A stretch of DNA of 64,000 nt from Octopus bimaculoides (taxonomy: Eukaryota): NCBI RefSeq assembly GCF_001194135.2, contig NC_068988.1:80215059-80279058 (forward strand), written 5' to 3'. A program made the translations under genes and the position numbers. The notes beneath the pieces were generated by a model, which searched no databases, had not been told where the DNA came from, and worked only from the letters and a program-made list of their open reading frames with translations. Numbering within the stretch: the first letter of the stretch is position 1; each line of letters starts with the position of its first letter. Positions 4,630 to 59,517 of this stretch are shown here, piece by piece.

Positions 4630-4723
4630 TCAAGTAAACAAACAACTCATCTTCGGCTCATCTGCTTCCGTGTAACTGTTCAGGGTTCCTTCTCCACAAA
4701 TCTTTAACACTGCATGATGAACT
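4630..4723 (-). CDS. CERKL: CERKL-like terminal coding exon
   Basis: ttctttttAG acceptor. Encodes (R)VHHAVLKICGEGTLNSYTEADEPKMSCLFT then TGA, matching the R(V/L)H..L.....G C-terminal motif. 94 bp. Confidence 0.88.
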
Positions 4724-5660
4724 CTAAAAAGAAAACAAAACTAGGTATTTAAAATGTAGTTTTGGCACTTTTAGCTTGAGGGTTCCATTTCACAACAAGA
4801 TACAAGTAAAATTATTTATTTTTACATGATTTTTAAAATACACAAAAATATGAACCTCAGGCTAGCTAATTTGAAGCAATACTAAGATTTTGAGTTTTAT
4901 CTTCCAGTATCACATTTAAATATATGTGCCTTGAAACTCAAAATTATTATTGTGAGTTCTTGATCTATAAATATCATATCATACATGTCATCTACTTCTT
5001 AAATAACATAAGCTGCAGTAGTAACAAAATTCCACTTTTTACACTTTTCTACAGTCAGATGTCCTTTCAAAATGAGGTAAAATTTCCCCTCAAAGAACAA
5101 GGGGACATATTTTCATAGAAAATTGGAAAAAAATAACATCACTTATATAAAGGAAGTGCTTGCTTATAACTAATACATGACATTCAAACAAAAGAATACA
5201 ATCACATCCACACACACATATGCATGTCACACAGATTCACATATATATATATATATATATATATATATATATATATATATANNNNNNNNNNNNNNNNNNN
5301 NNNNNNNNNNNNNNNNNNNNNNNNNNNNNNNNNNNNNNNNNNNNNNNNNNNNNNNNNNNNNNNNNNNNNNNNNNNNNNNNNNNNNNNNNNNNNNNNNNNN
5401 NNNNNNNNNNNNNNNNNNNNNNNNNNNNNNNNNNNNNNNNNNNNNNNNNNNNNNNNNNNNNNNNNNNNNNNNNNNNNNNNNNNNNNNNNNNNNNNNNNNN
5501 NNNNNNNNNATATATATATATATATATATATATATATATATATATATATATATAGATAGATAGATAGATAGATAGATAGATAGATAGATAGATAGATAGA
5601 TAGATAGATATACATATTCACATATATATACATATAATATATACATACACACACACATAT

Positions 5661-6834
5661 CATCATCATCATCATCATCATCATTATTTAATGCCAATTG
5701 GCATGGGTTGGATGGTTTGACAGGGCTAGCACACTGGAAGGCGGCACCAGACTCCAGCCTGATTTGGCATGGTTTTCTATGGCTGGATGGCCTTCCTAAC
5801 ACCAACCACTCCAAGAGTGTAATGAGTGCTTTTATGTGCCATTTGCATGACACCAGGGTACTTTTACATGCCACCAGTATGGGTGCCATATTGCGTGACA
5901 CTGGTATCTGCCATGACTGCAATTTTGCTCAGCTTGATGGATCTTATTCTCAAGCACAACATAATGCCAAAGGTCTCAGTCATTGCCTTTGTGAGGCCCA
6001 ACACTCAAAAGAAACTCAGTCACTTTGCTTTCATGAGGCCCAATGCTCAAAAGGTACTCAGCCACTTTGTCTCTGTGAGGTCCAATGATTGAAAGGTGTT
6101 CTTTACATGCCACCAGCATGGATACACTTGGCTTGATGGGTCCTCTCAAGCACAGCACATCACCAAATGTCTCGATCACTAGTCATTGCCTCTGTGAGGT
6201 TCAAAGTTCGATCAGAAAAAGTTCTCTGTATAAGGCCTGTACAGCCCTTATTAACCATTCGTTAATCCCCAGTTTCTGCATCGCCCACCAGATAAGGGAT
6301 TGGAGGACCCTGTCAAAGGCTTTCTCCAAGTCTACAAAAGCCAAGTACAGAGGTTTATCTTTGGCTAGGTATTTCTCCTGCAGTTGCCATACCAGGAATA
6401 TGGTATCAATGGTGCTTCTACCTGGCACAAAACCGAACTGCATCTCATCTAAGCAGACTCTCTCCCTAATTAGTTGGGCTATGACCCTCTCCGTGACCTT
6501 CATCACCTGGTCCAGCAGTTTGATACCCCTGCAGTTATTTCTATTTAAAGCGTCACCATTACCTTTGTTTTTTGCTAAGTTAACTTTAAGGCCCTTTGAT
6601 TCTAGACCATGCTCCCATACCTGGAACTTTTTCTCAAGTTCAGGTTGTAATTCAGCTATAAGAGCAAGGTTATCACCAAAGAGGAGCTTCCAGGGGCATC
6701 CTTTCTTGAATTCCTCTGTTATTGCCTGGAGGACTATGATGAACAAGAGGGGGCTGAGTACTGATCCTTGGTGAATCCCTGCTTATACCCTGAAATCTTC
6801 GTAGTTATTGCCAACCCTCACCTTACTGGTAGCA
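5661..6834 (-). mobile_element. RTE-clade LINE remnant with rearranged RT segments, 3' UTR and (GAT)n tail
   Basis: Motifs GIHQGSVLSPLLF, LLFGDNL (YADD position), QFGFVPGRSTIDTIF and LAFVDLEKAFDRV. 3' UTR shared with 45840-47517. Confidence 0.9.
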
Positions 6835-6869
6835 ATATATATATATATATATATATATATATATATATG

Positions 6870-7050
6870 ATAGATCGCTGACCACAACATTCAAACTTTT
6901 TTTCTCCATGATTTTCTCCTTGTTTTCTCCTTATTCTTTCTGTTGAAGAGCGTAGCTCGAAACGTTAAAGACTTTCTCTATTCCCGAGCGTTAAACTAAT
7001 ACATCCTTTTGTTGTTTACACCACCTGTCCTTCTCTGTTGTTGTTTTTTT
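6870..7050 (+). mobile_element. Penelope-like terminal-repeat remnant with hammerhead-like motif
   Basis: TCTTT-CTGTTGA-A-GAGC-gta-GCTC-GAAACGTT-AAAGA at 6935-6971. Confidence 0.55.
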
Positions 7051-7479
7051 CGTAAATTCTCCCATATATATATATATATATATATATATATATATATATA
7101 TATATATATATATATATATATATATATATATATATATATATACGCATACAAACACACACACATGCATATGCATATATATACACACACACACTGTATATAT
7201 ATTCATGCACATACAAATGCACGCACACGCACACACATACACAAATACACACACACACACTCACACAAATACACACACACACACTCACACACCCTCACGC
7301 ACACACACACACACACATATATATACCCATTTCTGAGGATTAGAATAATAAGGGAGTGTCTAAGTCAATACAGAAGAAATCATAAGAGGCTTTATTTGGA
7401 GGACACTGGTTTTCTGACTCTTCAATTTCTTTGTGGATACAACTGAATATTTATTATATGCACCCATACAATAATTATC

Positions 7480-56745: not shown

Positions 56746-56812
56746 CAGTGATATTTTGTTGAGTCCATATCTTCAATCAAATCTGTTAGATGTTCACCAC
56801 AATTCTCCAATT
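56746..56812 (-). CDS. CERKL: CERKL-like exon
   Basis: cctttcAG acceptor and TG|GTCAGT donor. Encodes (E)LENCGEHLTDLIEDMDSTKYH(C). 67 bp, phase 1/2, joins both flanking exons in frame. Confidence 0.85.
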
Positions 56813-57174
56813 CTGAAAGGAAAATAAATAGAATATATTAAAACAGAAAAATATTTTATTACATTCTACATCCTGTACAGAGATTTACTAAAATAAAGAA
56901 TAATAATAACAAATTCAATGCCTTATATATTGGGATCAAGGGAATGAAGCCCATGCACAAGACTGGAAGGCTGAAATATAAAGTTAACATTTGCAGGATT
57001 TGAATTCGGAACATACAGAGATGTAATTAAGTATAATATTCTGCCAATTCCACCACCTACTACCCTTGTATATTCATATTAATGAATTTATGTTGGTTAA
57101 AATTGTAACAATTTTTATGACTCAATCTGAGCCAGAATATCGCCTTGAATCATTGCTGTCTTGTATCATTTTAA

Positions 57175-57410
57175 ACCAGTATGTTACTTTAATCCAGTGT
57201 GTCACTTTGAACCATTATTGTATCAATCCAGTGTCACCCTGATCCAGCATATTACCTTGATCTAGTGAGTTACCTTGAACTGCTATTGTTTTGATCCAGA
57301 GTGTCACCTTGATCTAATATGTCAACTTGACCCAGGGTACTATCTTGATCTAGTGTGTTACATTGAACTATCATTATCTTGATCCAAAGTGACACCTTAA
57401 GCCAGATCTA
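57175..57410. repeat. Degenerate minisatellite (about 17-bp ttgatccagtgtgtcacc unit)
   Basis: Periodic ttgatc(c/t)ag...(t/c)acc. Confidence 0.65.
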
Positions 57411-59385
57411 AAATGAGCTGAACAGCCATCTTAAGCCAAGTAACCCTTTGAGTCAGAGTGTCTCATAAAATCGGTGTTCAGCACTAGATTCAGTTACTTT
57501 TTACAAGTTAGAGCTGATGTTTTCCTCAGGGACATTTGCCAAATTCTAGGTGAGTCTAATATTCCTACAATAGCATGTCCTGCTCAAAAATACAATAAAT
57601 GAGCTGTAACAGATTTGCACTCATAACTTATTTCCTGGATTTACCATTTAGCCATTTAGCTTCTGTTTGGAGTGTCTTTTCATGGAAAACTATACAATCT
57701 AAGAATTAAAAAAATATGACTATTTTGTTTTGGAGGCCCATTTTCTTTTCCTAATTGACATAAATGACATGACAAGTGTCACCAAATACAGTAAAATAAA
57801 AATGTTTGCAGATGACTCTAGCTTTCAGAAAGTCTTCAACAAGATAAGTGACTGGCCAGAACTTCAATTTGATCAAAACACTATGATTTAATGAGCAAGA
57901 AAAATAACAATATGTTGCTAAATGAGAAAATTTTTTTATCACATCTACCATGAAAAAGATGTGCTTAAACAACCAAATTGTTTTTCTGCAAGAGGACCTC
58001 AAATGATGTAAAATATTAGAGACTTATGTGAAAATGTCGACAACATAAACTAGAGCAGCACTACACCATCAATAAAATTGACATAATGTACAGAATGTGC
58101 TCTTTGATCCTATTCACTACCCTTTGAATACTGTTACTTACTGTGATATCTCCATGTCAAACACAAGACTTTGAGAACTGAAGACCTGAGAAAGTCAATA
58201 CCCCAACCAAAACATAAATGTCAAAGCAGGCCTTGATTACTACAATCACTTTGAAAAGCTTCATCTCTATTCTCTCCAATATTATCAGAAGCACTATAAC
58301 ATTTATAAAATGTGGAAAATATTCCATCTCCCAAAGGTTGTTTGTGTCAAGGATAGCTCCCAATGTCATATGTCCCACACAAAAATCAAGCTCACATTAC
58401 TTTACAACTCAACTATTTTATCTCAACTAGTCCTACTCAATTCAATGCTATCTCAAAACAAATCAAACAGTATAATGACTCCATAATCTTTAAACATTGC
58501 CCAAATATATTCCTCCAAGAAATATCAGATAAACCCTTTTACTTTAGTCCATTTCAGCCAACAATTCCCAGCTTAAGTGAGCAATGATGTCACTTAAATA
58601 TAATTTTAAAAGAATGGTGCCTCTATGTTTGATAAATCCTTGTATCTTGCAGGCTGAACCTAATTTTATTAGTTGAAGTTTTAATTACAAATCAATTAGT
58701 CATTCTTCCATTAAAATTGACTTCCATAATCAACACTTTAAAATTCCTATTTTCATATGTATCACTATGTTCGTGTGTCACTAGATCTGCCCTCCTTACA
58801 GCAGTTAAGACATTGATTTTCATATACTTGTGCTATCCATTATGAATCAATAGTTGAGGTATTGATTTTGCTCATTTAATATCCATATTCCATGCTGACT
58901 TGGGTTGGATGGTTCAACAGAATTTGATGAGCCAGAGGTAAGTGTTGAGAACCCCCAACCCCTAACTCTCTCACGTTATATATATATATATATATATNNN
59001 NNNNNNNNNNNNNNNNNNNNNNNNNNNNNNNNNNNNNNNNNNNNNNNNNNNNNNNNNNNNNNNNNNNNNNNNNNNNNNNNNNNNNNNNNNNNNNNNNNNN
59101 NNNNNNNNNNNNNNNNNNNNNNNNNNNNNNNNNNNNNNNNNNNNNNNNNNNNNACCTCTATTTTATGCGTGTGTATATGTCTGTGTGTGCCTCTGTGTGT
59201 GTGTGTGTGTGTGTGTGTGTGTGTGTGTGTGTAATTCCCTTTTACTTTTTCAAGTTGAAAGTAAAACAGTTCAATAACACACAATTAATGCCATAACAAT
59301 ATGAAATAATGATGTACAACATGCATGAAATAGAGGTATTGATATACCATAATAAAATGATATGACAATCAGTAAAATATTTTAC

Positions 59386-59517
59386 CAGAGAAATCAATAT
59401 TTGTGTTTGCATTTTTGAAGATTGGTTCCACAATTGAACCATATGTCATTAATCCCTGTTTGTTTCCAGCATGCGGCTGACACAAAACTCTTAGATTCTT
59501 TGGACGCTCTGGGAAAC
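59386..59517 (-). CDS. CERKL: CERKL/ceramide-kinase-like gene, first exon visible in window (start of DAGK catalytic domain)
   Basis: ttttCAG acceptor and G|GTAAAA donor. Encodes FPERPKNLRVLCQPHAGNKQGLMTYGSIVEPIFKNANTNIDFS, matching the RPKxLxxxxNP..G/K motif of CERK/CERKL. 132 bp, phase 1/1. Confidence 0.9.

Follow-up and report, generated by a model that had tools for sequence, protein, structure and literature searches.

This article concerns a gene of the ceramide kinase family on the minus strand of a 64,000-nucleotide stretch of the Octopus bimaculoides genome (NCBI RefSeq assembly GCF_001194135.2, contig NC_068988.1, positions 80,215,059 to 80,279,058 of the forward strand), which will be called the window and whose first letter is position 1 for all coordinates given below. 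The window holds the last 11 coding exons of this gene, that is, its 3' two-thirds, encoding residues 151-596 of a protein of 596 amino acids (aa), and for this species both the gene and its name are already recorded in RefSeq and UniProt, as is its exon model in RefSeq, such that the locus is an ordinary one and not new. CERKL is the human retinitis pigmentosa RP26 gene, and the comparisons described here support the octopus gene as a cephalopod member of the CERKL-type paralogue, which would have parted from CERK in an ancient split. Taken as a whole, the explanation that combines the annotated RefSeq gene, the domains of a lipid-kinase family, a place in the CERKL-type clade and a probably non-canonical function is, in my judgement, very likely to be correct.

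The locus and its exons

All four peptide strings quoted in the original prediction, an earlier reading made from the letters of this window, are found on the minus strand, and the chain was rebuilt from AG..GT segments of suitable phase and from tblastn matches to cephalopod proteins (Table 1). AG precedes every one of the 11 exons, GT follows all but the last, the phases match, and the spliced sum of 1343 nt reads as one split codon, 446 residues and a single terminal TGA stop, with introns that are canonical GT-AG and run from 0.6 to 14 kb (sizes that are estimates owing to assembly gaps). The original prediction of eleven exons of 67-215 bp between 4630 and 59517, joined through GT-AG sites into a stop-free product of about 447 aa, was hereby reproduced independently, and since its length agrees with 447 once the true sixth exon is used, that exon was probably already part of the earlier chain. 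It had also stated that several of the exons were absent from the track of open reading frames (ORFs), and only E8 and E10 do appear among the ORFs of at least 60 aa. At the 5' side, the first two bases of E1 finish a codon opened in an upstream exon beyond the window, the DAGK catalytic domain begins in the product of E1, which is identical to RefSeq XP_014776250.1 from residue 151 onward, and residues 1-150 have no match anywhere in the window, including 59518-64000, so the 5' exons lie past coordinate 64000.

Table 1. Coding exons, assembly gaps and other features of the window
Feature	Position	Strand	Length	Description
E1	59517-59386	minus	132 bp	Product (G)FPERPKNLRVLCQPHAGNKQG...; acceptor ttttcag/, donor /gtaaaata; tblastn (O. 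vulgaris protein)
E2	56812-56746	minus	67 bp (smallest)	Encodes ELENCGEHLTDLIEDMDSTKYH; in-phase AG..GT enumeration
E3	42653-42505	minus	149 bp	GGDG motif (LVVIGGDGTVNKV), through ...KIGVIPTG; tblastn and splice borders
E4	38168-38094	minus	75 bp	Encodes TTNHIAQSVIGTCDPVTAAIHISL; donor /gtaagtga; tblastn
E5	28138-27955	minus	184 bp	GHYRYVDLC...YGFAGNVLTFAERYR...ALTQSKL; end of DAGK_cat and start of CERK_C; tblastn
E6	25015-24944	minus	72 bp	Encodes RCYMCKVEYRQIEDDSEVKNACTR(G); first cysteine of CxxxCxxC; borders ttgccag/ and /gtaagttg; tblastn (P0003/P0004)
E7	17168-17098	minus	71 bp	Encodes CTVCRVPEKLDESGLQETQQTYA; completes CTRGCTVC; tblastn
E8	16523-16309	minus	215 bp (largest)	Encodes DSALSSEWKVGPPQYFMNVGIFTIPGLCSFAPEGLSKFTHLADGSMHLSLVHNTERSEFLHFLKRHTTSKDQ; best-conserved CERK_C block; tblastn
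E9	14317-14183	minus	135 bp	Encodes FDLPFVTCYKVRQVRITPYPQITDDKGRSSPVLPMQSETKDDSVK; tblastn
E10	10201-10053	minus	149 bp	Ser/Lys-rich linker and C5 motif region ...SIWNVDNEPNPPLDLEF; tblastn
E11	4723-4630	minus	94 bp	Terminal coding exon, encodes RVHHAVLKICGEGTLNSYTEADEPKMSCLFT and the TGA stop at 4632-4630; tblastn
Candidate poly(A) signal	4592			AATAAA/ATTAAA hexamer, 38 nt 3' of E11
N run	5282-5509			Intronic
N run	18340-18349			Intronic
N run	28679-28929			Intronic
N run	42063-42366			Intronic; closest gap to any exon, 138 bp from E3
N run	43652-44096			Intronic
N run	54967-54976			Intronic
N run	58998-59153		156 bases	E1-E2 intron, 232 bp from E1
Dinucleotide runs	54895-55053; 42440-42490			Flank the gaps at 54967-54976 and 42063-42366, respectively
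SINE-like copy	27380-27580	minus		Holds the false exon 6
Other SINE-like copies	near 3663-3798; 9025-9168; 10696-11091; 13568-13718; 25831-25963; 26141-26274; 38405-38560; 62907-63058; 63265-63336
Mos1-type remnant	12289-12525, on to about 11600	minus		E9-E10 intron
ORF	47593-48534	minus	313 aa	GTG start; E2-E3 intron of 14 kb

E2 follows a strong polypyrimidine tract (ttattttcctttcag) and is backed by tblastn with the cephalopod query P0003 as well as by identity to the RefSeq protein, while a competing candidate at 51960-51913 (VIIEYSSALLGMLKEC), itself a tblastn match, was dropped because it had no donor of the right phase. For exon 6, a segment at 27531-27463 (SNSVDVNFAFRPFEIKYVPVEY) was favoured at first as its '...YVPV' resembled the 'YLP' strand of CERK and SPHK, and was then dropped; it sits inside a repeat resembling a short interspersed nuclear element (SINE) of which the window holds at least 10 copies, it aligns to no orthologue, and the CERK_C domain scores 107.6 bits with it and 117.1 bits when it is left out. 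The true E6, at 25015-24944, came to light by tblastn with the O. vulgaris protein. Because the false and the true exon 6 both keep the frame open, an open frame is by itself not discriminating here. An alternative donor of E9, six bases upstream of 14183 and ending the exon at 14189, was likewise discarded; the RefSeq model uses the donor at 14183, and so does P0285 (...DDSVKGSDSG...), a cDNA-like contig from a congener.

The annotated gene and its orthologues

The product of the window is identical at 446 of 446 residues to positions 151-596 of XP_014776250.1 (UniProt A0A0L8H2R2, 'ceramide kinase-like protein [Octopus bimaculoides]'), which falls into one 90% cluster with the O. vulgaris protein and represents the same gene with the same exon model, having in addition the 150 N-terminal residues that are encoded outside the window. 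Agreement of this extent is far beyond chance. As this identity extends through the stop codon, the claim that the exons make up the complete 3' part of one gene proved right. Orthologues are annotated in O. vulgaris, Argonauta, Sepia and many further molluscs, and the octopus chain is colinear with its cephalopod counterparts, sharing 95.3% of residues with O. vulgaris CAI9726761, 84.8% with the protein of Argonauta hians and about 61% with those of decapodiforms. Among the matches of a word-indexed search were 'kinase [Octopus vulgaris]' (597 aa), 'ceramide kinase-like [Argonauta hians]' (602 aa) and 'CERKL [Acanthosepion pharaonis]', along with numerous molluscan entries named 'ceramide kinase-like protein', and when a 128-aa query was used in such a search, the sole matches were two genomic exon fragments of another cephalopod, 83% identical to E5.

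Evidence for transcription in relatives comes from assembled contigs. Three independent, cDNA-like Logan contigs of other cephalopods, drawn from separate runs and 2.2-2.3 kb in length, each carry an uninterrupted orthologous ORF of 600 aa, and the congener contig P0285 (1441 bp) covers residues 445-596 at 98% identity and thereby joins E8 to E11, which are spread over 12 kb in the genome; the contig search found none encoding P0003. These data bear on the notion of a decaying pseudogene, or of an annotation artefact amid repeats, for which one could cite that the exons amount to 2.4% of a 55-kb interval with repeats and seven gaps and that the transcripts considered come from relatives. The frame is nevertheless open over 11 exons with intact splice sites, the protein is colinear at full length with 95% identity to O. 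vulgaris and 85% to Argonauta, spliced transcripts exist in a congener and in decapodiforms, and the exons are free of intra-window repeats, all of which make decay or artefact scarcely credible at this locus.

The seven runs of N within the range of the gene are all intronic and touch no exon. Since the spliced protein is colinear with that of O. vulgaris, which derives from a chromosome-scale assembly, with one single-residue indel in an acidic run as the only difference in length, no coding exon is concealed by a gap, and colinearity with the Argonauta protein is similarly complete save for a few short indels. Long dinucleotide runs directly border two of the gaps, a (TG)n run with about 80 copies of its unit and, on the minus strand, a (CT)n run, and are a likely reason for the assembly breaks there.

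Domains

The Pfam scan was run on two preliminary chains, with the false exon 6 either in or omitted, before E6 had been corrected, and both domains expected of the family were well above their cut-offs: DAGK_cat (PF00781) scored 78.4 bits against 23.6, aligning chain residues 8-151 with profile positions 2-125 of 125, and CERK_C (PF19280) scored 107.6-117.1 bits against 33.5. The annotated orthologues have both domains in their precomputed Pfam lists. The N-terminal PH-like domain PF25382 is not in the precomputed list of the octopus proteins, and is present in that of vertebrate CERK. The octopus product has the fold of a lipid kinase from the ceramide kinase family, with a DAGK-type catalytic domain followed by the C-terminal beta-sandwich of CERK.

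CERKL-type or CERK

Names are of little help in deciding which member of this family the octopus gene represents, because 'ceramide kinase-like' is applied by NCBI to both clades and is hence ambiguous. When the O. vulgaris orthologue was compared by phmmer with 1.84 billion representatives, the best matches after the lophotrochozoan ones were a 'ceramide kinase-like protein' of the sea star Acanthaster (221 bits), a representative of the vertebrate CERKL clade (215) and a 'ceramide kinase-like protein' of the acorn worm Glandiceps (211), followed by lancelet CERK at 182 bits and by the CERK-type paralogues of the bivalves Ylistrum (152) and Dreissena (148). Among non-cephalopods the nearest relatives are the molluscan, annelid and nemertean entries, at 35-45% identity (examples being Haliotis P0107, Pecten P0109, Dreissena P0110, Lineus P0021, Capitella P0135 and Owenia P0125), which share the cysteine motif, a Q-x-x-AG-x-K-x-G loop and WN[IL]D[NGY]E, and which at 660-740 aa are roughly 100 residues longer than the cephalopod proteins of 596-602 aa.

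A curated neighbour-joining tree of 68 sequences was then considered (L-INS-i alignment, 499 columns, Kimura correction, 500 bootstraps), in which the octopus protein falls into a joint CERKL-type clade with 82% support, a clade that had 60% in a larger neighbour-joining tree of 167 sequences. Within it, the cephalopods form a branch of their own (100%) inside a lophotrochozoan clade of molluscs, nemerteans, annelids, a rotifer and a flatworm (87%), and this lophotrochozoan clade is sister to the ambulacrarian clade (99%) and the vertebrate CERKL clade of lamprey, hagfish and gnathostomes (91%), which come together at 52%. A bilaterian CERK clade containing vertebrate, lancelet, bivalve and nemertean sequences (77%) stands separate from the octopus protein. 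Furthermore, each of Ylistrum, Pecten, Dreissena and Lineus is represented once in the CERKL-type clade and once in the CERK clade, and from this presence of both paralogues in scallops, Dreissena and Lineus it follows that the CERK/CERKL split would predate the protostome-deuterostome divergence.

Profile hidden Markov models (HMMs) lead in the same direction, as the window protein scored 298.9 bits with a model of deuterostome CERKL, 223.1 with deuterostome CERK and 218.0 with protostome CERK; the model built from deuterostome CERKL alone therefore outscores the CERK models by 76-81 bits, and the bivalve and lancelet CERK controls behave in the opposite manner. Similarly, an alignment of 24 representative sequences reveals the signatures of the CERKL type in the window protein, including a one-residue deletion in C4 before xGFxG (SQ-YGFAGN), WNVDNE and GGDGTVNKV, and across the clade GGDG is followed by T or S rather than by MF, and WN[V/I/L]D stands where every CERK has WNCDGE. 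The view put forward in the original prediction, that the gene is CERKL-like and not CERK, is borne out by the 82% support and by the margin of the models, with no grouping with CERK seen, and the signatures that it had named, WN[V/I]D as against WNCDGE and an 'xGFxG' segment shorter by one residue, do occur in the database sequences.

Several points weigh against the interpretation developed so far. The trees are distance-based rather than maximum likelihood, and a support of 82% is good, not decisive. Identity over the whole chain is nearly equal to the probe sequences for human CERKL (32%) and human CERK (30%), which served as probes only (the CERKL probe retrieved gar CERKL and no mammalian clusters, and no conclusion is based on it). 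The coexistence of CERK with a CERKL-type gene is shown in bivalves and a nemertean, not in Octopus, and the octopus protein keeps a CxxxCxxC motif that is regarded as specific to CERK (PMC3069040). In addition, identity to the RefSeq model is no independent proof of expression, given that the model was predicted from the same genome; the transcript evidence comes from relatives and not from RNA reads of O. bimaculoides; and what is said of function derives wholly from the comparison of motifs.

From these points one could argue that the octopus gene is a true CERK orthologue whose affinity to CERKL is artefactual, citing the retained cysteine motif (PMC3069040), the intact GGDG, the closeness of 30% and 32% identity, and the use of the NCBI names for both clades. 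The neighbour-joining trees, however, place the protein with CERKL at 60-82%, the CERK models lie 76-81 bits lower even when molluscan CERK is included in them, bivalves and Lineus possess a separate, far more CERK-like gene with NPFGGK, GGDGMF, YGFYGD and WNCDGE all intact, and the cysteine motif is ancestral in kind, being found in ambulacrarian CERKL-type proteins too; orthology to CERK is consequently very unlikely in my estimation. A different objection would be that the lophotrochozoan proteins of 600-730 aa descend from a lineage-specific duplicate of CERK and are drawn to deuterostome CERKL by long branches or convergence, only because the catalytic motifs of both are relaxed and evolve fast, in which case there would be no orthology to RP26. 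The joint clade does have moderate support by a distance method (60% and 82%), and degenerate catalytic motifs such as GGEET in Acanthaster and GSDNL in Glandiceps provide the setting in which attraction artefacts arise. Against such a duplicate speak the clade-wide one-residue deletion in C4 together with the replacement of cysteine by valine, isoleucine or leucine in WNxD, an internal topology that follows the species tree by separating lophotrochozoans from ambulacrarians and vertebrates, and the preference of all lophotrochozoan members for a model built exclusively from deuterostome CERKL, whereas their CERK paralogues prefer the CERK models, so that I consider an independent origin very unlikely. 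Membership in an ancient CERKL-type paralogue is thus the reading retained here.

Two further placements emerged from the same comparisons. Squamates, a turtle and some fishes have a second CERK-type gene (P0024, P0095, P0096, P0112, P0105, P0184) that forms its own 100% clade as sister to classical vertebrate CERK and bears the NCBI name 'ceramide kinase-like'; judging by this position, it appears to be a third member of the family in vertebrates, separate from CERKL, and further confuses the naming. A sequence of the sponge Oscarella pearsei (P0196) branches basally in the CERKL-type clade, at a weak 54% in the curated tree, which hints that the CERK/CERKL split might be older than Bilateria.

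Motifs and predicted function

The octopus protein combines features of both paralogues. With vertebrate CERKL (gar P0090, lamprey P0186, hagfish P0193) it has in common the clade, the DAGK_cat/CERK_C pair, the C4 deletion, GGDG[T/S], WN[V/I]D and a glycine-rich loop unlike the consensus of CERK, but identity to gar CERKL is about 29%, C5 has DNE where vertebrate CERKL has DGD or DGE, a long Ser/Lys-rich insert precedes C5, and CxxxCxxC is present in the octopus. Vertebrate CERKL is connected with a role in the retina, where it serves photoreceptor survival, with nuclear shuttling and with protection against stress. With CERK it has in common the family, the fold, GGDG and the placement of CxxxCxxC between C4 and C5, and it differs in being without the invariant CERK forms NPFGGKxxG, GGDGMF, L(L/M)GYGFYGD and WNCDGE.

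The CxxxCxxC motif, which takes the form CTRGCTVC in the octopus and is divided between E6 and E7, is reported to be a conserved feature of every CERK that matters for activity (PMC3069040). It is lacking in the CERKL of gar, hagfish and lamprey and in two other representatives of the vertebrate CERKL clade, and is kept in other invertebrate CERKL-type proteins; because the ambulacrarian ones have it too, it would be an ancestral character that was lost only in vertebrates. At the nucleotide site, the octopus protein reads QPHAGNKQG, TGTTN and DNE where CERK invariably has NPFGGKxxG, AGSTD and DGE, and GGDG is intact. Across invertebrate CERKL-type proteins, the residue between D and E in C5 is N, Y, M or G. 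The ambulacrarian proteins of Acanthaster (P0129, GGEET) and Glandiceps (P0133, GSDNL) have a degenerate GGDG and keep CxxxCxxC.

Such variation among members suggests that the constraint on canonical catalysis may have been relaxed throughout the CERKL-type clade, and that canonical catalysis may have been lost more than once, or early, in the CERKL lineage. For human CERKL, no ceramide kinase activity has been shown experimentally (PMC2628313). As regards the octopus protein, the departure of its nucleotide-site motifs from the CERK forms disfavours canonical activity, and the retention of GGDG and of a CxxxCxxC motif needed for CERK activity favours a residual one; on balance, a non-canonical or non-catalytic protein is more likely than a standard ceramide kinase, and competence on some lipid is an appreciable possibility of clearly lesser weight.

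Comparative value

In 2009 it was suggested that CERKL is possibly exclusive to vertebrates (PMC2628313), and keyword searches of the literature found no paper on invertebrate or cephalopod CERKL. The trees show a CERKL-type clade that, going by its lophotrochozoan, ambulacrarian and vertebrate members, would be bilaterian-wide and not a vertebrate invention. If CERKL is this ancient, and considering that its invertebrate members keep the cysteine motif and some of the glycine loop, both lost in vertebrate CERKL, the octopus protein could even be an active lipid kinase, an idea that I regard as tentative and somewhat doubtful, and that, if true, might show which substrate or role an orphan retinitis pigmentosa protein had ancestrally, in an animal whose camera eye evolved independently. 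The octopus protein is for this reason a reasonable candidate through which to approach the original role of a human disease protein, which is offered as a hypothesis and not as a discovery; to the description of the genome itself, the locus contributes nothing new.

Repeats and intron content

The phrase 'hidden in 55 kb of repeats', by which the original prediction had described the setting of the exons, needs some qualification: detectable intra-window repeats cover only about 18% of the window (a lower bound) and overlap none of the 11 exons. The introns contain SINE-like and mariner-type repeats. The SINE-like repeat is about 150 bp long and its copies in the window are 70-86% identical to one another; the copy that spans 27531-27463 supplies there a 69-bp AG..GT segment whose phase is that of the true E6, and is hence a ready-made false, or potentially exonisable, exon. 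No tRNA genes were found in the window by ARAGORN.

The longest gap-free ORF of the window lies in the E2-E3 intron, and its 313-aa product had no Pfam match at E<=0.01 and was not searched against large protein databases; an uncharacterised transposable element is a possible source of this ORF. Nine intronic ORFs were compared with Pfam and yielded nothing except the remnant of a helix-turn-helix domain of Mos1 (HTH_48, 37 bits against a cut-off of 24). This belongs to a mariner/Mos1-type transposase remnant that is oriented on the strand of the host gene, and whose downstream open segments read ...VLLSVWWDMKGLVHFELF...

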